From NCBI GenBank assembly GCA_964270895.1, contig OZ185442.1: DNA of 64,000 bases. One strand, 5' to 3'. Positions 34,801 through 58,560 of the stretch are shown here, piece after piece (within the stretch, counting starts at the first letter, position 1; each line of letters begins with the position of its first letter). The translations under genes and the position numbers were made by a program. The DNA is from Podarcis filfolensis. Its lineage: Eukaryota. The notes under the pieces were generated by a model. It worked only from the letters and a program-made list of their open reading frames with translations. It did not search any database and was not told the DNA's origin.

Positions 34801-37800
34801 GGGGGTGTGCAATGGAGTGCCCTTTGTGGGTGGGTTTTTAGCCATCCATCCATCCTGCTGCCAGTTTCCTCTCTTGGTTGATCTAAATTAAGTATTGCAG
34901 TCCAGATGTGCCTTTCATAGATGCAATACCTGTGTTACCTTCTTAGATATTCATATCCATGAGTAACTTTTCTCATGAGTAGTCCTAAGAGGGAAGTTGG
35001 GCTATGTTTTTTCCTCAAATAGTAGTATCAGCTTTGAACAAAAAGTCACGGCAATTTTAAAACTGCCAACAAACACATTTTTTTTGGGTGATGACTTACA
35101 GAAATGTAAAAGCAACTGGGGTTGTTTTGATCTGTAATACCTCGTTTTCCATACAGCAGCAGCAGCCTTGCTGCTTCCATCCTATAATTTGCAATATTTA
35201 CTGTCTCCTGTGATGACTGAAAACTGCCTGAGCCCTGCTATCTTTTTCTCCAGAAGCCTTTTAAAATGGTGACAAGCAGCAGTTGACAGTAAGGCAAATT
35301 ATACCATTGTATGTTTGAAGATTTCTTCATTTTTAAAATAAAAAAAAAATAAGGAAGTTTTGTGAAGCTGTATTCAGATATCATACCAAGCCATTCCAAA
35401 GTCAGCACTGGAAGCTGTGCCTTTGAATTGGGCTCACTATGGTTTGGCATAATATTTGAATTGATAAATCAGTGATGGGCATGGAGCCCATGCCTTGCAT
35501 TCAAAAGGTCTCTGCTTTGATTCCTAGCACTTCCAGGTAGCAAGGAGATGAGAGAGAGCCCTGCCTGAGAGCGGAGTTTAGGCTAGATGGAGCAATAGTT
35601 TGATGCAGGAGAAGGCAACTCCGTAGGATCATTGCTGAAAGGGTCATTAAATCATTAAAATTTTCCCTAAACAGGGCTGCCTTCAGATGTCTTCTAAAAG
35701 TCAGATAGTTGTTTGTTTCCTTGACATCTGATGGGAGGGCGTTCCACAGGGTGGGTGCTACTACCGAGAAGGCCCTCTGCCTGGTTCCTTGTAACTTCTC
35801 TTCTCGCAGTGAGGGAACCGCCAGAAGGCCCTCGGAGCTGGACCTCAGTGTCCAGGTAGAATGATGGGGGTGGAGACACTCCTTCAGGTATACAGGATCG
35901 AGGCCATTTAGGGCTTTAAAGGTCAGCACCAACACTTTGAATTGTGCCTGGAAGCGTACCGGGAGCCAATGTAGGTCTTTCAGGACCGGCGTTATATGGT
36001 CTCGGCGGCCACTCCCAGTCACCAGTCTAGCTGCCGCATTCTGGATTAATTGCAGTTTCTGAGTCACCTTCAAAGGTAGCCCCACGTAGAGCGCATTGCA
36101 GTAGTCCAAGCGGGAGATAACCAGAGCATGTACCACTCTGACGAGACAGTCTGCGGGCAGGTAGGGTCTCAGCCTGCCTACCAGATGGAGCTGGTATAGA
36201 CAGCTGCCCTGGACACAGAATTGACCTGTGCCTCCATGGACAGCTGTGAGTCCAAAATGACTCCCAGGCTGCGCACCTGGTCCTTCAGGGGTACAATTAC
36301 CCCATTCAGGGGTAAAAAGAAAAATGCCTCTTTACCCTGGCTTTTGACACTTGTGGGTCTGAAATATATACCTCTCCTTTTTTCTGTGATTGCAAGTTGT
36401 TTTAAAAAGTTTTTAATATTGTGTTTTAATGTTGTAACCCGCCTTGGGACCTTAGGGTGAATAATATTTTACTATATATCATAATCTCTAGGGAGTGAGA
36501 AGCTATGTAGAATCAAGTTCCACAGCAAGAAGCATCCTTCTAATTGCATGTTTCAATGCACTCCTTCTTGCTCTGAAAGCATTCAGAGTGTGTTACTTGG
36601 TGAGATCAGATTACAGCAGCTCCATGGGATACTTAACACGTGCACCTATTTTAAAATGCATTTAACCTTTTGACCAAAATCCTTCCTTAATCCATTGTCA
36701 TTGGAAACAGATACATTTGAGACAGCGTGATTAAACTTTGGTAAGGCACTGATTTGAAACTTCGGGAGGGAATGTTTTGGGAAGCTGTGGCAAGCTAATG
36801 ATTGGTCTGCTAGACTCCTTGTTGTTCAAGGTTGGGTGATAAATGTGTGCAGCTGAAGAAAGGAGTTTGTGGGGATGACCAGTCTTGTTTCTGCCTGTGG
36901 GAAGGAGGGGTGGCCGGTGGGGGACCTGTCAGGATAATCTGAGGGATTCCTGAATTCTTGAGGTGGGTGAATGACTGACAGGGCTGGCCATTCCCTATTG
37001 GAGCCTTGGTCTCAGTATGGAATGGGAAGGGTTATTGCCCCTCTACTCTTTCCAGCACTGCAGGCTCTGTAATGCTTTCTGGTGTAGGGAAGATCAGACC
37101 GCTGGAATGCACACAGCTGATGTTTTGCAGTGAACACAACTGAGCAGAAGTGAAAGCACCCTACTGTGCCTACTCTGTGGTGGTGGGGGAGGTGGAAAGG
37201 TCTTACTTCACCTTCTTTGTTGCGTCCTCATGGCGTTGTCCAGTTTAGCTCCTTTAGTTGGGATCTGTTTTGGAGGAAAGTGGAGTGGAATCCTTGGCTG
37301 TCTGCTGTGATGGATTTACCCAAGGCTAGCTGGACCATAAAGAAGGCTGATCGCCGAAGAATTGATGCTTTTGAATTATGATGTTGGAGGAGACTCTTGA
37401 GAGTCCCATGGACTGCAAGAAGATCAAACCTATCCATTCTGAAGGAAATCAGCCCTGAGTGCTCACTGGAAGGACAGATCGTGAAGCTGAGGCTCCAATA
37501 CTTTGGCCACCTCATGAGAAGAGAAGACTCCCTGGAAAAGACCCTGATGTTGGGAAAGATGGAGGGCACAAGGAGAAGGGGACGACAGAGGACGAGATGG
37601 TTGGACAGTGTTCTCGAAGCTACCAGCATGAGTTTGACCAAACTGCGGGAGGCAGTGAAAGACAGGAGTGCCTGGCGTGCTCTGGTCCATGGGGTCACAA
37701 AGAGTCGGACATGACTAAACAACAAGAACAGCTGTTTACCCAGGTGTTTTGAGGTGGCTGGTTACAGTCCATTGTTGCTTGCTTAGATTCTGTTACCTGC

Positions 37801-46800: not shown

Positions 46801-49800
46801 TCGGTGGCTTTTAAAAGTTAGCGGAAGGTGGCTTTCATTCATTCTTAATTCAGGATTGTGTGGACTTGATTGCTAAAGAAGTATGCCAATTTAATGGTTT
46901 TTGTTACTTAAACCTGCAGTCAGTTTTAAATCTCCCGAGATAGCAGACGATCTCGTCGCCAGGCGCCTTCAGTTGGTCCAGTCAATCAACCGCTTTAACA
47001 AGTAAGCTTCAAAAACTGCCTTCCGAGTGCTGCCTGCCAGTACTGCCAAAGCATCAGATAACACTGCATGCAGTCTTCAATTGGGCTGGAGCTGCAGGAT
47101 GTCTTCCAAGCCAATCTGGTGTGGTGGTTAGTGTCAAACTAGGACCTGGGAGACCAGGATTCAAATCCCCACTCGACGGCCATGAAGCTCACTGGGCTTG
47201 CAGTGCCCACCACTTTCCCCACTTTCCTTCATAAAGGGGTTGCAGGGGGAGTGTCATTGGTAGATCAATGCATTTGCTTGTGCAGACACGTGTAGCACCT
47301 GCTGTGCATTTGAACAGGGCTTGCCTATGTCGTGCCGATCTAAACATTCCATATTTTGATAGAAACCGTAACCTGAGTTTGAGGTCTTCATTTGAGCAGG
47401 AGCTGGGACAAGCTTTTTGCCCTTCCGTTTAGCCCTTCCATAGTACAGTGGTACCTCGGGTTACAGATGCTTCAGGTTACAGACGCTTCAGGTTACAGAC
47501 TCCGCTAACCCAGAAATAGTACCTCGGGTTAAGAACTTTGCTTCAGGATGAGAACAGAAATCGCACAGTGGTGGTGTGGCGGCAGCGGGAGGCCCCATTT
47601 AGCTAAAAGTGGTGCTTCAGGTTAAGAACAGTTTCAGGTTAAGAACGGACCTCCAGAACGAATTAACTTCTTAACCCAAGGTACCACTGTATGAGCCAAC
47701 ACACCAGGAGGTCTTCAATTAACTATTGTTTCATCTTTTGTCCAAACTGGGGAAAAAAACTATGGTTACTAGCATCAGAACAAACCAGGGTTTGAAGTTG
47801 GTTCAATTACATTGGCTTATTCCAATGCTGGCAACCATAGTTTCTCCTTCTGACACACCATTTGGCACTTAACAGAATTCAGCTCGGTCAGGTCTCTACT
47901 ACTTGAGGCAACTTTCGGAGACTGCACAGGGAGCTGCAGCAGAGAGAATGGCTGAAAAGCCCTTGTGCTTCTCTTTTGGTTCCAGCCTTTGCATATGCCA
48001 CCTGGTTAGTGAATCCTAAAATATAGAAAGGGAGACAGAAATGTTTTTCAATAAATAGGGCCACATCCAAAGGTGCCCCACGGAAAGTTGACATTCTGTG
48101 AATATGGGGAGCTTTGATCCTGTGGAGGCCCCTGTAAATGGATCAGAGTGATTTTTGCAGATTTCTCTCTGCCACTCCTCCAGTTCTATTTAGAAAAGTT
48201 CATCATCCCTCTGATGAGATGGAGCATGTAGGGAAATTGCCAAAATTGCCTCCCTCCACATCAGTTCAAAGGAGTGTCTGTTGGACCCCAAATGGAAGGG
48301 CACTTTTGAATCCAACTCACGATGTCCTAGCCATGTCCAAGTGTGTCACAGTGACACCTCCACTGCTTAGGTAGGGCTGACTTTGTTTAAAGGGCCTGAG
48401 CACCTGCAAAGAGGTCAGGTTGTACAACACTCTGTGACGTCTCAATTAGTGGCTGGAGAATAAAGAATCCAATACACAAGCTGGCTGTCCCTAATTTAGA
48501 CTGTTGGAAAAGTAGCTGATGCTCCTAAGGGTAAATTGAAATGACTTGTCTTCTGACCTTTGTACGCTTAGACTCCAAAGGACAACTCATGACATTTATA
48601 CCCCAGGAAGGTCAAATATTAAGAATTTTCAGCAAAGGCAATGGAGCAGGTTTTGTTACTGAAATTCCGCCACCTGGTGGCTGGCAGAGATACACTGCAG
48701 TACTGAGCGACTTGTACCGAAATGTAACAAGTTTCTTTTAACCATGTTTGTTTGTGTCTTTAGGTCAAAAGACTTGCGGAAAACTATAACGAGAGATAAA
48801 AGTGTCCCTAACTTTAATGATGAATTACTGCACCAGGTAGGAAGACAGGTTTGAAATGAAGGGCTTGCTTTTTTACTTTTTTATTTCATAAAATGTATAT
48901 ACTGCTTGGTTGTAGAAAAAACTCTCAAAGCGGTTTACAAAAATTGCAAACTGAAATAAGTGGTGGCTGAGATTCTTAGGGTGTTAGTTCTACAAATGTG
49001 CTGGATATGCAGCATAATAGACAAGAGTCTATGGCTGGGGAGACCTGATTTCAGACCCCAACTTGCTACGGAGTTGGTTGTAAGCTTACTCAACAGTCAC
49101 ACCTGGCCTGTTATGAAGATAAAAATGGGAGAATCCCGATGTCTCCCACTGTGACCTCCTTGGAAGGGCAGGTGTGCCAGCCATAGCCCCTTCCTCAATA
49201 TGGAGTGCCTCTTACTTGAATGATCCATTCCTTCTCCCCTATATTTTTAGTTATCTATTGGAGAGGTCCAGTAGATGAATTGGTTCAGAAAAAGACAATT
49301 AGGATGGTCAGGGATGAGAAAAAAATAAAGATATTGGTTAAAGATATTGGAGGCGGGGGTAGGCAGGATAGCACTCTTTAAATCCCTGAAAGGCTTTCAC
49401 AAAGAGGAAAGCAAAGAGTTGTTTTTTGCTGCCCCAGAAAGCCAGACTTGTCCCACTGGGCTGAAGTTACAGGAGGGTAGCAGCTGATTAGTAGGAGAAA
49501 CTTTTAATGGTATTTGCTTTAGATTTATCAGCCAGATAAAAATAAAGCATCTTAACGTGTTCTTTTTTGTTTTGATTCTCAAGTTAGCTATTAAGAGCTT
49601 TGATAAGAGCAAGCTAAAGCCCGTGGATCCTTTAAAACAAAGCAGGATGCAGATCCTTGACTCCGGCAGCAGAGGGGAGCCCACACTGGATGAAGTCGAG
49701 TCTGATGTGGCAGCAGCGCCTCTTAGAAGTAAACTAATGCATCGGAGACACACGGTTAATGTGGCCCTTTCAGATGCAGATGACATCCACAATTTATCCA

Positions 49801-49844
49801 GAGATCCCCCTGTTTCTGCACTGGAAGGCTGCTCTGATGATTGA
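10325..49844 (+). CDS. ANKRD27: ANKRD27/VARP (VPS9-domain ankyrin repeat protein), spliced CDS of 28 coding exons, 1055 aa
   Basis: The assembled exons translate to [25 protein letters not shown]..., the VPS9 core ([33 protein letters not shown]), two CHPLCxCxxC motifs and ankyrin repeats. All junctions are GT-AG with consistent phase; total 3168 nt. Synteny with PDCD5 matches human. Confidence 0.97.
11359..11469 (+). CDS. ANKRD27: ANKRD27 coding exon 2
   Basis: tttag|[37 protein letters not shown]|gtacaa. Confidence 0.95.
11879..12035 (+). CDS. ANKRD27: ANKRD27 coding exon 3
   Basis: [52 protein letters not shown]|gtgagt. Confidence 0.95.
12711..12865 (+). CDS. ANKRD27: ANKRD27 coding exon 4
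   Basis: [51 protein letters not shown]|gtcagt. Confidence 0.95.
13740..13799 (+). CDS. ANKRD27: ANKRD27 coding exon 5
   Basis: [20 protein letters not shown]|gtgagt. Confidence 0.95.
13906..13959 (+). CDS. ANKRD27: ANKRD27 coding exon 6
   Basis: [18 protein letters not shown]|gtaagt. Confidence 0.95.
14040..14105 (+). CDS. ANKRD27: ANKRD27 coding exon 7
   Basis: [22 protein letters not shown]|gtaggt. Confidence 0.95.
14296..14478 (+). mobile_element. Squam3-like tRNA/CORE SINE
   Basis: tagctcagtgatagagcacctgttttgcatg...gttcaatccctagcatctccag...gtagacaat...ctagatggacc...ggcagcttcctatg. Confidence 0.75.
14490..14616. mobile_element. Degenerate palindromic hAT MITE abutting a SINE
   Basis: ggccctcca...ctacaattcccatc...tgggagctgtagt...tggagggcc. 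Confidence 0.6.
14697..14773 (+). CDS. ANKRD27: ANKRD27 coding exon 8
   Basis: [25 protein letters not shown](S)|gtgcgc. Confidence 0.95.
15529..15650 (+). CDS. ANKRD27: ANKRD27 coding exon 9 (VPS9)
   Basis: [40 protein letters not shown]|gtctgt. Confidence 0.95.
16378..16456 (+). CDS. ANKRD27: ANKRD27 coding exon 10 (VPS9 catalytic Asp)
   Basis: [25 protein letters not shown](W)|gtatgt. Confidence 0.96.
18197..18329 (+). CDS. ANKRD27: ANKRD27 coding exon 11 (VPS9)
   Basis: [44 protein letters not shown]|gtaagt. Confidence 0.96.
18858..19189. mobile_element. Palindromic non-autonomous DNA element
   Basis: Termini ggccacatc / gatgtggcc; internal inverted blocks (gggaactgt..gttaag / cttaac..acagttccc). 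Confidence 0.6.
20395..20550 (-). mobile_element. Squam3-like SINE
   Basis: gatgctgggattgaacctggg...catgcaaagcatgtgctctgccactgagctatggccc. Confidence 0.7.
21010..21129 (-). mobile_element. Squam3-like SINE
   Basis: gactggcag...gggtttcaggcagg...ccttctgcatgccaagcag...ccactgagctacggc. Confidence 0.65.
24112..24331. mobile_element. Tigger/pogo-like MITE
   Basis: TIR cagtggtacctc ... gaggtaccactg with TA TSD; highly similar copy at 47446. Confidence 0.85.
24569..24661 (+). CDS. ANKRD27: ANKRD27 coding exon 12
   Basis: [31 protein letters not shown]|gtttgg. Confidence 0.94.
25520..25647 (+). CDS. ANKRD27: ANKRD27 coding exon 13 (zinc-fingernail 1)
   Basis: [42 protein letters not shown](G)|gtaagg. 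Confidence 0.96.
26553..26635 (+). CDS. ANKRD27: ANKRD27 coding exon 14
   Basis: [27 protein letters not shown]|gtaagc. Confidence 0.96.
28246..28361 (+). CDS. ANKRD27: ANKRD27 coding exon 15 (ANKR1)
   Basis: [38 protein letters not shown]|gtaagc. Confidence 0.96.
28825..28864. repeat. (CA)n(GA)n compound microsatellite
   Basis: Directly visible in the sequence. Confidence 0.9.
29455..29640 (+). mobile_element. L2 3' end with (ATT)n tail
   Basis: catcagatgtcaaggaaa...gacttttagaaaacatctgaaggcagccctg matches the 3' end of the 35655 copy. Confidence 0.75.
30042..30134 (+). CDS. ANKRD27: ANKRD27 coding exon 16 (ANKR1)
   Basis: [31 protein letters not shown]|gtaagt. Confidence 0.96.
30903..30995 (+). 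mobile_element. Squam3-like SINE head
   Basis: gtggtagaaacacctgctttgcatgcagaaggtcccaggttcagtcccc...ccaggtaggg. Confidence 0.7.
31250..31447 (+). CDS. ANKRD27: ANKRD27 coding exon 17 (ANKR1)
   Basis: [66 protein letters not shown]|gtactt. Confidence 0.96.
31967..32026 (+). CDS. ANKRD27: ANKRD27 coding exon 18
   Basis: [20 protein letters not shown]|gtaacc. Confidence 0.92.
32137..32250 (+). CDS. ANKRD27: ANKRD27 coding exon 19 (Ser-rich linker)
   Basis: [38 protein letters not shown]|gtaagt. Confidence 0.9.
34361..34405 (+). CDS. ANKRD27: ANKRD27 coding exon 20 (VAMP7-binding region)
   Basis: [15 protein letters not shown]|gtaaga. Confidence 0.95.
35470..35640 (+). mobile_element. Degenerate Squam3-like SINE abutting the L2 3' end
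   Basis: ccttgcattcaaaaggtc...ttgattcctagcacttccaggtag...gctagatgga...aggcaactcc. Confidence 0.55.
35655..36309 (-). mobile_element. 5'-truncated L2-clade LINE (RT C-terminal region)
   Basis: [23 protein letters not shown]...[14 protein letters not shown]...[14 protein letters not shown]...[15 protein letters not shown]; upstream [11 protein letters not shown] block separated by a frameshift. Confidence 0.9.
37328..37730 (+). mobile_element. RTE BovB LINE 3' fragment
   Basis: [91 protein letters not shown]...; (caa)-type tail; in-frame TGA. Confidence 0.92.
39115..39250. mobile_element. Short palindromic hAT MITE
   Basis: TIR caggcttcctcaa / ttgaggaagcctg; same actacaattcccatc...tgggagttgtagt core; ggctag-containing flanks. 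Confidence 0.85.
40028..40153 (+). CDS. ANKRD27: ANKRD27 coding exon 21 (zinc-fingernail 2)
   Basis: [42 protein letters not shown]|gtctgc. Confidence 0.95.
40845..40986 (-). mobile_element. tRNA-Lys(CTT)-derived SINE with CR1-type 3' tail
   Basis: Minus strand reads catagcttagttggcagaacatgagactcttaatctcaggggcatgggtttgagtcccacattggg, close to tRNA-Lys-CTT, followed by ...cccttccaattctacagttctctgattc. Confidence 0.8.
41326..41523 (+). CDS. ANKRD27: ANKRD27 coding exon 22 (ANKR2)
   Basis: [66 protein letters not shown]|gtacgg. Confidence 0.95.
42223..42342 (+). CDS. ANKRD27: ANKRD27 coding exon 23 (ANKR2)
   Basis: [40 protein letters not shown]|gtaagg. Confidence 0.95.
42534..42993. mobile_element. 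Non-autonomous hAT (Charlie-like) element, 460 bp
   Basis: TIR cagaggttttcaacc / ggttgaaaaccactg; perfect 8-bp TSD ccctaaag on both sides. Confidence 0.9.
43870..44030 (+). mobile_element. MIR/CORE-like SINE remnant
   Basis: agattcaaat...ccatgaagctcacgggtggacct...acctcacagggttgatgtgaggataaaatgg...; similar heads at ~28875, ~47110, ~49020 and ~57510. Confidence 0.55.
44312..44473 (+). CDS. ANKRD27: ANKRD27 coding exon 24 (ANKR2)
   Basis: [54 protein letters not shown]|gtaagt. Confidence 0.95.
45344..45443 (+). CDS. ANKRD27: ANKRD27 coding exon 25
   Basis: tttaaag|[33 protein letters not shown]+A|gtgagt; resembles the human NSKIMELL...KIRKK exon as recalled. Confidence 0.88.
45483..45598 (-). 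mobile_element. Squam3-like SINE
   Basis: ggattgaatctgggaccttctaatgcaaagcatgtactctaccactgggctatg. Confidence 0.65.
45728..45863. mobile_element. Short palindromic hAT MITE
   Basis: TIR cagtgatggccaaacttggccc / gggccaagtttggtcatcactg; TSD ccctaggg/ccctaggt; core actacaactcccatc...gatgggaattgtagt. Confidence 0.85.
46920..47001 (+). CDS. ANKRD27: ANKRD27 coding exon 26
   Basis: ctgcag|(I)[26 protein letters not shown](K)|gtaagc; phases (1 in, 2 out) fit the flanking exons; divergent from human. Confidence 0.8.
47446..47689. mobile_element. Tigger/pogo-like MITE (second copy)
   Basis: cagtggtacct ... aggtaccactg with TA TSD; carries an extra acagacgcttcaggtt-type subterminal repeat. Confidence 0.85.
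48764..48836 (+). CDS. ANKRD27: ANKRD27 coding exon 27
   Basis: tttag|[24 protein letters not shown]|gtagga; matches the human RDRSVPN block as recalled. Confidence 0.9.
49360..49510 (+). mobile_element. CR1 LINE 3' ORF2 remnant
   Basis: ctctttaaatccctgaaaggctttcac...gggctgaagttacaggag...aggagaaacttttaatggt. Confidence 0.65.
49584..49844 (+). CDS. ANKRD27: ANKRD27 terminal coding exon 28
   Basis: ctcaag|[16 protein letters not shown]...RRHTVNV...EGCSDD-TGA; RRHTV is shared with the human tail as recalled. Confidence 0.88.
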   Translation, partial: LAIKSFDKSKLKPVDPLKQSRMQILDSGSRGEPTLDEVESDVAAAPLRSKLMHRRHTVNVALSDADDIHNLSRDPPVSALEGCSDD

Positions 49845-52800
49845 TGCTTTCGAAAACACTGGCAAGGAAGCAAGTTTGTAACCAAAAACAACAGCAGCAG
49901 CAGCAACACCACCAATTGGCGTCAGTTCCACTCCCTTCAAGAATCAAAGAATCCTTCGGATCAAGGCATTCAAAACTGCAATGTGAAGACTGGCAGGAAG
50001 AGGAACCTCTCCTCCCTCAACCAACACAGTTTGCAGTTGGAGACAGAAGGGCTGTTTATTTGCAGTTGGATCCACAAAACCCAACAGGTGTGATCCATTT
50101 TAAACACACACACAACTGAGATGTATATGGAGATATCAAAAACTATGAGACACATTAGTCTGTACTTGAAGTCTTGAAATCAGATATAACTGTAATGGGT
50201 GTAAGTTTGGAACAGAATACCTATGGGACTTCCAAGGCCTACATAATTATAGTTTGAAAAGACAGCGGTTTCTTTCCATTTTTGCACTACTAGTTTACAC
50301 CAATTGTTGAAAGGAATTACACACACCGGCAGCATAGTTTGACACAAAGGGCAAGATTGCACAGATCCTTTGGTTCTCATTTATTTTATTGAAACATGGG
50401 CCATATATGGGTAGTTGGAAGTGAGGGATGTTATAGTCACTGTTTTATAAACAAAGGGTACATCTTCTTTTGGAGAGCAGGACTTGGATTTTGAATCATT
50501 TTATTTTATGTAGCAACCCACATTAGTGAACATATTCTCAAATACTTGTATTGAGACTACAACCTTACCCTATTTAATTTAAAATAGCAAATATGCATGG
50601 CACAATAATATGATTCCACTAAATGCAATGAGTCTAGCTAGAGAGTACATCTGTTTCCACCGGGTCTTGGAAGAGCTGCTTAGTTGACCTTACTTGAAAA
50701 GACACTTCCAGATTGATAGATGGGGGCACTTTTAGTAATGGAGCGTCATTTTGGTAAACATTCCATTCTTTATTTTTATTTTTAAGAGGGGTTGAATTAT
50801 CACTTGAACAGCACAATAACTTTTGTCAATTCCAATTCTGTTTTTATGTAATATTTGTAAACAATATATTGGGTTTTTTATTGTTTAATATTTCTCTGTT
50901 CAGAATGTTAGTGCAAGGTATATAAAAAGGTAGAATGCTAGTGGGCTCCTGAAGGACAAGGAAAAGTATATTTTTCTACTAAGTAATTGAGTTCACCTAG
51001 ATTTCTTACATGCCTTTGACTTGTGCCAAATGATGGGAGAGAGAGAGAAATAGTAAAATTAACTAATCTATGCTCTTAATGTGGGACTCTTTATTTATGG
51101 TAAGTCATGAATTGCAGCTTGCTGGTTGATGGGAGCTGCTGCCATAAAGCATTTTCTGAAAACTTTATAGCCTGTTGCTCATGTTCCAGTTTTAGCAACA
51201 CAGATCTAGTTGCATGAAGGTGTGGATGCTTCTGTGGAGTCTGGAAGCAGGAGAAAAGCAATGCATTCTGGGTCATCCTAAGCCTCCACTGTAAACAAGT
51301 TCCCTTGTATGCAATTGTGAAAAATTATCAAGTTTGATATGAGCATTGTAGAGGGGGCAGGGAGCAACGTGCATTGGTTTTTTCAAAAATCAGTGCCTAA
51401 TGCTTTATAGCACCCAGAGACACGGGGAATGGTGTCTTCCCTGCTTTATCCCAAAGAAAGAGGCATTTGGCCACAGCTGTAAACAATTAGTGCACCAGTG
51501 TCAATGTGCACTAATTATAGTGTCTTTAATACAATTACAATGGACAAATAATTGCTCTCTACAACTCAGGTTTCTTTATGGAAAGATTTTAATATGTTTC
51601 AAAGCTCTTATTATATATGTTCCACTTCCACAGTGAAGAAGAGGGTCAAACCCCTCCTCCTTTTACAGTCTGCCTTACATGGGATGTTGGTACAGTAGAC
51701 ATACAAAAACCATTTCATTTTGCATTCAACAAAAAGGCACAACCAGAAGTCACAATGGCACCATGATGGCCAGGGGAATTAGGCAGCTGTTTCAATAACT
51801 GCCTGAGAAAAGGAGGCAGTTTGGATAAGAACAAATCTGTTTTGTCTGCTACGAACCTTTAGCCTGTGAGATGACAGGAATTGCAGTTTGGCGACATCTG
51901 GTGAGCCAAAGGTTCACCACCTGGTCTACACAGTTCTGAGTTGCAATGATATTTAAGAGAGAATCCAGCTGCTGTTAAACCTTTAAATAATTTTAATACG
52001 AAAGATTTAAGCACATGCTTAAGTCTTCTGTTGAAATGAAAAGGGCTTTAAAGATCCTGACTTTGGTTGCATCACTCTCAATCACTCATGCTATTAGCAA
52101 ATGTATGGCAGGGGTGGGGAAAGACATCTCTTGAGAGAAATATCTCCCAAGCACACGTTATTTCAAGCTTCATAGCGTGCCAACCAAGATTTATCTAATT
52201 TTCAATCCAACAGATCATCCACCAAGATACTGTATCATGGAACCATATTCTGATCAACAACCAACCCCTCTGGCTTTGGTTCAGTGAAACTGCAAGTGTT
52301 CCAGTACCCAAGCGGACATGACATGTAACTCACACATTACATCATGATCCTTTAACATTTAAATCAGTAGTTTTCAACATTTGGGGACCAACACATGTAT
52401 TTGGGGACCAGTTTCTTAATTTTCTAACCTATCTGTACAGTGGTGGTGCTCCTGTTGCAATCTACCTTAGATCAGGCCCCAACTGAAGACCAATGCTTCA
52501 AAACCACACTAACCGGGATTTGCTGTCCATTAGGATGCTGAAACGGCTTTAAAAACCCTAACAGCAAATTCTAGTTACCATCCTCGGGAGAAAGGGGAGC
52601 TTGAACATGGATGGGGAAATTCCATGGCTGTTCCAAATCCTTCAACCGTGGTTAAAGGATCATGAATGTCATGTTTATACAGCAGCCTCTGTATAAACAC
52701 TGAATCTTACATATTCAAATCAAAATCTTGTATCCTGTGAACTATTTAGCCTGCACATGCAACTCTACTAACTTTGACAAAACCAGCAGGCTGCTTGCAA

Positions 52801-56100: not shown

Positions 56101-58329
56101 TGTTGCTGTTTATTTGTTTCACCTTCATTTTTCCTATAAATTTATTTTTATTATTATAAGTTAATTTTATCCCAACATCACGCCTGCAGAGACATGAATC
56201 TGGATGACTCCCAGTAGATGTATCTCACAACATGCTTCCAGTCATGTGGTAATACTGATTACAGGATACAATCATACTAGCAAAAAAAACCCCTAAGATG
56301 TGAAGGGGTGCCTTCTTCCCGCTACTGTGCACGATGTAATAAAGGGATATCAGTCTACCAAAAAGGTGGCTTTTGTTTTCATCCCCTCTGTTACCTCTGT
56401 TTTGCTTCTTGCTGTGCGATGTCACTGGAAGGATCCTGAAATGTTAGAAATAAGAACCAGTTTAGTAGTAAAGCATAGCACCACTGAAGAAGTACAAACA
56501 AACAAACGCTAAAGTACACATATAAGGCCAGGACTGTTCTCATACAGAAAAACTCATAAATGCACAGCTATTACTGCTCCCAGGTAGGGAGAAGGCACTA
56601 GATCCTAAAAGATGAGAGTCAACTTTTGAAGGTGTTGAAGTACACAACCTTCAGGTAATACAGAATCTACCAATCAAGATGGGAAAGTACCGTATTTTTC
56701 GCTCTATTAGACGCACCGGACCATAGGAGGGGGAGAATAGGAAAAAAAACCCTCCCGCCGGGCTTGTGGAGAGCTGCCTGAAGCCCGGGGTGCACAGCGC
56801 CATGCTCCCCGGGCTTCGGGCTGCAGGCAGCTATCCGCAAGCCTGCGGAGCCCAGCGGGAGTTCCCGCTGGGCTCCGCAGGCTTGCGGATAGCTTCCTGA
56901 ATCCTGGAACGCAAGAGGGGTCGGTGCACACCGACCCCTCTCGCCCTCCAGGCTTCAGCGAAAGCTTGCATTCGCTCCATAGGACGCGCACACACTTTCC
57001 CCCTTCATTTTTGGAGGGGAAAAAGTGCGTCCTATAGAGCGAAAAATACGGTAGCTATTCTTCAGCCCCACAGATGGACAAGTTACTTAATACATGCCTG
57101 CAAACTGTGGTAAGAATTGCCTGTAGGTCACCAGGCAAGAAAACTTCACAGAAGTTTCTTTTTTTCCTTTGATGCCACAAATGGGCATATAATAACAGGT
57201 GAGCTGGCAAAAAAGATGTGTACCAGTAATGTTTTTGCAAAGGCTGGCTCTAAATTCCTAGTCAATGGCTAGATTTGACAGGCCCACCTTAGTGGATGAC
57301 TGATAAGTGCTTTCTACACAAGCCCCTTCTCCAGGTTGGCAGCTGGGTGTGGGGCAGTGGAGCAAAGTCATTTAAGAACCTTCCAAGAGCTGCATTTGGT
57401 GCTGGGACTGACAATCACTGAGCCCTATTTCCAGACAGTGGCCGAATCATAGAACCCCTGCTCCCTCCCATTCAGAGCCAGGGTGGCATAACCAATGTCA
57501 GAATACAACCATGGAGACACAGGTTCAAATCCCCACTCAGCTATGACATTAGCTGGGCCACCTTGGGCCTAACTTACCTCTCCCATGGTGGTTACACGGA
57601 TAAATATGGGGTTTTTTTGGGGGGTGGGGGGACTTAGGGTTGACAACAATCATGCACAAAAGCCCATGTAGGGTAAACGCAAAAAACCCAAACCAGACAG
57701 CACCATCAGTCCTTGTTTTCTCTCTTTCAACTGGTTAACTTCATTCATTTTTTTTTAAAGGGAGATGTTTGTGTTAATATTGGGTGTAAGCTGCTTTGGG
57801 GTTTTTTTGCTGAAAAAAAGAAGTGGAAACCCTGAAAATAAAGAGATACGCTGCCACCCCTGTATATACACTTTCGTGGGCGCCAAGCCCCATTGAACTC
57901 AATGGGTTTCCTTAGTGAGTAGGTATGTAGCACTGGAAATAATCCCAACACGTACGTGTGTGTGTGTGTGTGTGTGTGTATACAGACGTGCATAATACAC
58001 AAAACACGGGTCTCTTCCTCTGACTTCTCCCAGAGTGGTCTCTGCGCCCCTCCCGCCTTGCCTCCCACGCCTGAGGCGGCCCTGAGCCCGCAGTGAGGAC
58101 TAGCGCCATGCAATTAAAACCGAAGGCCCAGGCCCGCCCTTCCTCTGGCCGGCCGGCTAGAGGGGCCTCGCCTGTGGGCCAGGACACCGGGCGAAGCGCC
58201 GAAGGCGACGCCCGCCCGCGTGTGAGGGGACGGTCCAGGCCCGGCGCCCTCCGCTCCGCTCACCCCGTGCTTGGCTTGCAGCTCGGCCATCCTCTGCTTG
58301 CGCAGCGCCTCCAGCTCCTCGTCCGCCAT
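53132..58329 (-). CDS. PDCD5: PDCD5 (programmed cell death 5), spliced CDS of 6 exons, 124 aa
   Basis: [124 protein letters not shown]; all GT-AG, 375 nt. Confidence 0.97.
53842..53913 (-). CDS. PDCD5: PDCD5 coding exon 5
   Basis: cctag|[24 protein letters not shown]|gtaggg. Confidence 0.96.
54714..54805 (-). CDS. PDCD5: PDCD5 coding exon 4
   Basis: tttcag|[30 protein letters not shown]|gtaagt. Confidence 0.96.
55536..55597 (-). CDS. PDCD5: PDCD5 coding exon 3
   Basis: ttacag|[20 protein letters not shown]|gtaagt. Confidence 0.96.
56395..56435 (-). CDS. PDCD5: PDCD5 coding exon 2
   Basis: tttcag|[13 protein letters not shown](R)|gtaaca. Confidence 0.94.
56690..57051. mobile_element. Young TcMar-Tc2-like MITE in PDCD5 intron 1
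   Basis: 27-bp TIRs matching at 25/27 (ccgtatttttcgctctat..gacgcac), TA flanks, GC-rich palindromic interior. Confidence 0.85.
57956..57978. repeat. (TG)n microsatellite in PDCD5 intron 1
   Basis: Directly visible in the sequence. Confidence 0.9.
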
Positions 58330-58560
58330 GGCTAGAGACGAGACGTCGGTGACGCGCGACGTGGGCGGGGCCGCTTCTCTCTTCAATCTCTCCGGTTCGC
58401 GTTAGTGCGCCGGCGCAAGAGCAGGCGAGGCCAACGCAATCACGCACCGAGAGGAGGAATTATAGCACAGGCAGCGGAAGCCGAGCGCCGAACAGACCAA
58501 AGGAAGAGCCATCAATAGAATCAGACCACGAGGGTTTTCACGAGGAATCTTTCGCCCACG
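57990..58560 (-). promoter_or_regulatory. PDCD5 CpG-island promoter
   Basis: CpG-rich region spanning PDCD5 exon 1; GC box gggcgggg at 58363-58370; CRE-like tgacgc and ETS-like cggaag upstream. Confidence 0.8.
58264..58329 (-). CDS. PDCD5: PDCD5 coding exon 1
   Basis: [22 protein letters not shown]|gtgagc. Confidence 0.97.

Follow-up and report, generated by a model that had tools for sequence, protein, structure and literature searches.

A possible tandem pair of WH2/beta-thymosin-like modules in the C-terminal tail of non-mammalian VARP (ANKRD27)

WH2 domains, set in a disordered region, start with an amphipathic helix of at least 2-3 turns, after which comes an extended LKK(T/V)-type motif (PMC7407642). 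In the WIP structure 2A41, actin is contacted by L46KKT49 and by residues 52-55, with R54 in a salt bridge and S55 at the nucleotide cleft (PMC7407642). VARP connects Rab21, Rab32/38, VAMP7 and retromer on endosomes, the membranes on which WASH generates branched actin, and its two CHPLCxCxxC motifs are defined as VPS29-binding (retromer-binding) elements (PMC4059916). The literature we searched links VARP/ANKRD27 to neither WH2 domains nor thymosins and describes no direct contact between VARP and actin. An initial annotation of a lizard ANKRD27 locus had pointed to a thymosin-like motif in the VARP tail as undescribed, and nothing on such a tail motif was found in that literature. We describe here the tail exons, their splicing and conservation, a predicted helix-plus-extended architecture and a sub-threshold family similarity, from which we infer possible actin binding and a possible cellular role for the tail. 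Our tentative reading, which we place somewhat short of an even chance, is that the tail of non-mammalian tetrapod VARP carries a tandem pair of WH2/beta-thymosin-like G-actin-binding modules.

The window, a 64,000-nucleotide stretch of Podarcis filfolensis contig OZ185442.1, contains the whole ANKRD27/VARP gene on its plus strand (Table 1). Collinear exons cover residues 2-1068 of Zootoca vivipara ANKRD27 (P0065) at 85-100% identity in tblastn, and the coding region includes the parts expected of VARP: a VPS9 domain, two CHPLCxCxxC motifs at about 25600 and 40110, in the order found in VARP orthologues, two ankyrin blocks and a disordered tail. The ANKRD27 proteins matched in searches bear the Pfam VPS9 and Ank families. 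Within the tail, a Lys codon is split between the two exons that encode the upstream module (R1), and the second of these ends NFNDELLHQ in phase 0, directly before a GT donor. The 3' UTR runs past 50200, and reads over the microsatellite directly after the stop codon were skipped as repeat.

Table 1. Features of the ANKRD27/VARP locus and its surroundings, in positions of the window.
Feature	Positions	Strand	Basis
ANKRD27/VARP coding region, ~29 exons	10292-49844	+	Exon-by-exon tblastn with Zootoca vivipara ANKRD27 (P0065)
Tail exon with R1 amphipathic helix	46920-47001	+	Sequence, tblastn, RNA joints, AF2 helix
Tail exon with R1 LRKT motif, WIP-like 'long WH2' extension TITRDKSVP and first half of R2 helix	48764-48836	+	tblastn, RNA joints, profile alignment to 2a41_C
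Last intron, GT..AG, 747 bases	48837-49583	+	Sequence and RNA
Terminal coding exon, 86 codons plus TGA	49584-49844	+	tblastn, RNA; frame open to TGA at 49842-49844
R2 core, the motif of the initial annotation	49584-49630	+	Ile plus FDKSKLK as in thymosin beta-4; LKPV as WH2-type variant of LKKT/V
Third conserved tail island	49725-49763	+	Conservation profile; mammalian alignment
CAG/CAA microsatellite in 3' UTR	49878-49918	+	
Long intronic ORF resembling LINE reverse-transcriptase C-terminal part	35501-36136	-	By eye
Long intronic ORFs resembling LINE reverse-transcriptase C-terminal parts	37228-37752	both	By eye
Intronic interval of very high depth	45643-46040		Read and contig depth
Intronic interval of very high depth	47434-47831		Read and contig depth
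Looks like a first exon ORF of PDCD5, in a GC-rich stretch downstream of ANKRD27	58114-58386	-	By eye

Several features of the table stand apart from the tail. In the two intronic intervals of very high depth, reads and contigs reach hundreds to thousands of times exon depth in each of the four runs, on both strands, with many loose ends and odd joints; the depth and the joints make these intervals most likely high-copy interspersed repeats. The LINE-like intronic ORFs are probably decayed retrotransposon copies.

The terminal exon opens with the core of the downstream module (R2), encoded by TTA GCT ATT AAG AGC TTT GAT AAG AGC AAG CTA AAG CCC GTG GAT. Its acceptor is preceded by a polypyrimidine tract, with the AG at 49582-49583. 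RNA from close relatives bears out the joint 48836>49584: two of them have spliced transcript contigs that span it (X1, 3547 nt; X9, 2219 nt), and it recurs as a GT..AG joint in raw RNA-seq reads (X23, X24). Its listed position, 48834>49582, is equivalent given two ambiguous letters. The upstream joints, 45443>46920 and 47001>48764, are likewise present in the relatives' contigs and reads, and no sequence difference from the window is listed for the relatives' RNA within the R2 core. DNA and relatives' RNA thus agree with the acceptor and frame originally proposed, and with the identification of the exon as the end of VARP/ANKRD27. In R2, a helix (DELLHQLAIKSF) leads into DKSKLK(P/S/A)(V/I), a stretch that resembles the thymosin beta-4 core. 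The identity of the Ile and FDKSKLK with thymosin beta-4, on which the original observation turned, is visible in HMMER alignments to PDB entries 4pl8_H and 1hj0_A. A six-frame translation of the window (128,000 residues) contains a single occurrence of F[DN]K[STA]K.{0,1}L[KR], at the R2 site.

Not all annotated proteins include both modules. In a set made up of Sceloporus isoform X2 (P0086), the bird models P0006 and P0009, and P0030, P0057 and P0076, some isoforms stop right after ELLHQ with another short tail that lacks R2, and others skip the R1 exons or have insertions between ELLHQ and LAIK that resemble a retained intron. Alternative splicing may toggle the R1 and R2 modules, or the variant isoforms may be annotation errors.

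R1 was absent from the initial annotation. It spans the two exons directly upstream of R2, and opens with an amphipathic helix, from which a short linker leads to LR(K/R)T and then to a WIP-like extension. Its V, I and F have the spacing of thymosin beta-4 M6, I9 and F12, and are followed by F-[ND]-K-x-K, one extra residue and LRKT. The two modules lie about 31 residues apart in the disordered tail, a spacing within the range of tandem WH2 repeats. When the R1 and R2 profiles were compared directly, hhalign gave a probability of only 15%, with SINRFNKSK aligned in register with AIKSFDKSK.

Natural orthologues stood in for the joined protein, chiefly the Zootoca protein (P0065/P0011), whose tail differs from that of the window at 4 of 86 residues. 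Used alone as a phmmer query, the terminal exon returned only 9 representatives from the whole library. Word-index searches with gecko, tortoise and opossum tails gave about 150 ANKRD27 proteins from sauropsids, two salamanders, marsupials and placentals; fish, frogs, monotremes and snakes are outside this set. R2, in the form [LM]AIKSFDK[STNA]KLK[PSAC][VI], is kept among lizards (geckos, lacertids, anguids, varanids) and is found in amphisbaenians, turtles, alligator, and palaeognath and neognath birds. Both salamanders also have it (Ambystoma, LEIKHFDKSKLKHG; Lissotriton), and FDKSKLK itself is identical in lizards, passerines and the two salamanders. A lizard-specific origin was rejected on this distribution, and the broader suggestion that the motif is a squamate or sauropsid novelty fails on the salamander sequences, which place R2 at least as early as the tetrapod ancestor, with a later loss in therians.

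Across 51 non-mammalian tails, residues 20-71, which hold R1 and R2, are the best conserved, with majority-residue frequencies of 0.8-0.98; downstream of them the frequency falls to 0.4-0.6 until a third island is reached. In marsupials the R2 position is degenerate (PAVLSDNKVKLEDD), LRKT has become LRET or SRET, and KLKPV has become KLEDD. Placentals (Pongo, Pan, macaques, lemurs, dog, squirrels, aardvark) have an unrelated-looking PGRQSVTLRQNNLP at the R2 position and have lost both R1 LRKT and the R2 motif. The statement of the initial annotation that human VARP lacks the motif is in keeping with this result, the great apes (Pongo, Pan) and other primates being taken as proxy for human; the tail of a Logan sequence that is possibly human (P0115) is identical to that of Pan. 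The alignments leave out P0115, another possibly human Logan protein (P0117) and a protein labelled Homo sapiens (P0118). Agamid lizards are relaxed in both modules, with KSE/LRKA or LQKA in R1 and ATK or VAE/FHQ/LKTD in R2. This joint decay in marsupials, placentals and agamids fits one shared function for R1 and R2. Judged from these alignments, the scope of the pair is wider than first described, extending from salamanders to birds and degenerate in marsupial and placental mammals.

Two tails are recorded as observations in their own right. An ANKRD27-like terminal exon in Logan run SRR22184590 (P0008/L001) reads LAIKNFNNKQNPVD, in which the L-K is lost and RSHTISVAL is kept. In blastn, its contig does not match the window, and its sequence may represent a further lineage without R2. 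The zebra finch protein (Taeniopygia guttata, P0081) has a long (GSEGGSRSP)n-like tandem repeat after the RRHTV island that the other birds lack.

The same distribution bears on the possibility that the resemblance is a matter of chance without function, of an annotation or splicing artefact, or of a novelty confined to lizards. A seven-residue identity was, after all, spotted by eye among many possible motifs, and some lineages differ: Anolis reads LSIKIFDKGKLKPM, a Hemicordylus model has a 4-residue gap, and the agamids diverge as described above. Against this, the splice is borne out by RNA, and R2 persists in salamanders as well as in squamates, turtles, crocodilians and birds, which argues that it is neither lizard-specific nor neutral. 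We regard chance, artefact and a lizard-only origin as largely excluded and this explanation as highly improbable.

We next consider the family profiles. Pfam Thymosin (PF01290) matches R2 in 46 of the 51 non-mammalian tails at E<=0.1 (best E 7.7e-5); the chicken tail scores highest, at 21.2 bits (E 2.6e-4), lizard tails score 13-19.6 bits, and all fall short of the gathering threshold of 24.8. WH2 (PF02205) matches R1 in 10 of the 51 (best E 0.0011; 0.027-0.24 in individual scans), with listed scores of 11.6-14.6 bits against a threshold of 23.1. Pfam Thymosin thus picks up the likeness to thymosin beta-4 that the initial annotation had pointed out; scores for both families stay below gathering. 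These matches are only 12-17 residues long, and the Thymosin match covers profile positions 7-23 of 39 only; since it stops at position 19-23, the second thymosin helix is absent from R2. No other Pfam family matches more than 6 of the 51 tails, and neither Thymosin nor WH2 matches any of 18 mammalian tails. The terminal exon alone (49584-49841) has no Pfam match; a match requires the upstream helix, as included in the natural orthologue proteins. Noise of similar strength was also seen (PH_RASGAP, E 0.0024; RCDG1, 0.011; antibody VH frameworks on R1, E 3-8). Because the thresholds are not reached and the second thymosin helix is absent, the VARP tail is not filed in either family: the likeness is of the "works like" kind, and not membership.

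A profile of the 51 non-mammalian tails was compared with 177,635 distinct PDB sequences and gave five matches, the top four being actin-binding beta-thymosin or WH2 peptides solved alone or on actin. Three of these fall on R2: a thymosin beta-4/Cobl chimera (4pl8_H, E 0.014), thymosin beta-9 (1hj0, 0.052) and a thymosin chimera (3u9d_B, 0.1). The fourth, the WIP WH2 peptide (2a41_C, E 0.12), falls on R1, which is aligned with ISKGKKLKKTVTNDRSAPILD. Each of these E-values is marginal, and as three of the four matches share one motif they amount effectively to two independent signals. The mammalian tail profile matched nothing in the PDB up to E 10.

These results have to be weighed against a different view of the same segments, in which R1 and R2 act as short linear motifs recognised by something else than actin and their thymosin/WH2 likeness is convergent or coincidental. 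Such a partner might be calmodulin, a motor or adaptor, a kinase or phosphatase, or acidic lipids contacted through the basic-hydrophobic KSFDKSKLK patch. The family scores, all below threshold, are compatible with this view, and coincidences of short motifs do occur in R1, as with the antibody VH stretches QVQLVQS and RVTITRDTS. Two features of the alignments also hint at another partner: an 11-residue segment of R1 is nearly invariant, far more strictly so than is usual for WH2, and it survives as RDRSVPN in mammals that have lost both L-K motifs. On the other side, the top PDB matches of two distinct regions of the tail are, independently of each other, actin-binding peptides, the order of helix and then L-K/R-x-T/V recurs in both modules, and the R2 core equals thymosin beta-4 at 8 of 12 residues (positions 9-20). 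We consider a partner other than actin a substantial possibility, nearly as likely as actin.

The predicted structure of the tail agrees with a modular layout. An AF2 model of the 143-residue tail, computed with 51 orthologues, is largely disordered (mean pLDDT 62), with one predicted helix at residues 14-33 (pLDDT up to 87), followed by SKDLRKT of R1, and a second at residues 52-61 (DELLHQLAIR, pLDDT 76-80), followed by the basic motif of R2. In this model a non-helical basic motif thus comes directly after each helix, as in the WH2/beta-thymosin arrangement (PMC7407642), and no helix is predicted after R2. The helices are amphipathic and lie 20-60 residues past the last ankyrin repeat, and one could imagine that they form an intramolecular element that caps the second ankyrin block, for autoinhibition or as part of the structure. 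When that block (ANKR2) was modelled together with the tail, the ankyrin residues exceeded pLDDT 90, every residue from about 197 on was below 50, and no docking was seen; the model thus does not support such packing, and we give the cap very little credence.

The third conserved island lies outside both modules. Its RRHTV is invariant in 18 of 18 mammalian tails, and the R-H nearly so across the 51 non-mammalian tails. From its sequence it looks like a site for a basophilic kinase (PKA-type RRxT). Such an island is of interest because forskolin drives the Varp-dependent formation of melanocyte dendrites, and inhibiting PKA blocks it (PMC3279394).

If the tandem-pair reading is correct, each helix would dock in the hydrophobic cleft at an actin monomer's barbed face, with the L-K/R-x-T/V stretch following the acidic surface of actin. 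One or two monomers, or the barbed end of a filament, could in this way be held by VARP on VAMP7 carriers or on endosomes decorated with retromer and WASH. The tandem modules would have been present in the tetrapod ancestor and have decayed in therian mammals. A fuller version would make non-mammalian VARP a direct actin-monomer-binding part of the retromer/WASH retrieval subdomain, its tandem pair feeding or capping actin at VAMP7 and Rab32/38 carriers, with the link lost in therians, so that mammalian models miss an ancestral VARP function; this version we think unlikely. Binding of G-actin by the VARP tail would represent a new physical coupling between a SNARE/Rab regulator and the actin machinery. 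It would also supply a natural experiment, in which birds, reptiles and amphibians bearing the motifs are set against mammals that lack them, a contrast that could reveal the role of the coupling, for example in pigment cells or in neurite outgrowth. It would, finally, urge caution, as studies of mouse and human VARP would leave the ancestral protein uncovered.

Compared with known actin-binding systems, R2 is closest to thymosin beta-4, with which it shares I-x-x-FDKSKLK, that is, the end of the N-terminal helix, the linker and the L-K of LKKT. As in thymosin beta-4 and beta-9, the predicted layout is a helix and then an extended stretch, within disordered surroundings. In contrast, the equivalent of M6 is Gln, the KT of LKKT is replaced by P/S/A and V/I, and the second, pointed-face C-terminal helix of beta-thymosins has no counterpart; R2 is, moreover, embedded in a 1068-residue trafficking protein. 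R1, for its part, differs from thymosin beta-4 by the one extra residue between KSK and LRKT.

R1 more closely resembles the 'long' WH2 of WIP/verprolin (2A41). It has an amphipathic helix of three to five turns, with LVQSI in place of LLSDI, followed by KxK, L-R/K-K-T and a T-I/V-T-x-D-K/R-S-x-P extension that resembles LKKTVTNDRSAP of WIP, although its linker from helix to Leu is about three residues longer. In the alignment at E 0.12-0.15, the K/R-S and P of R1 would stand opposite R54-S55 and P57 of WIP, as numbered by counting from L46.

Tandem WH2 proteins (N-WASP V-V, Spire, Cobl) and ciboulot-type beta-thymosins share with the VARP tail a series of helix-plus-LKxT/V modules in a disordered region. 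VARP differs in having only two repeats and no C/A region with a conserved Trp; with that region lacking and the tail ending in EGCSDD, an Arp2/3-activating role is not expected. Mammalian VARP, the form studied experimentally, is orthologous to lizard VARP and has the same domain order. The R1 LRKT reads TSRE or LRET in the mammalian protein, and the tail islands F.FV.S..QFK.K, RDRSVPN and RRHTV are shared between the two.
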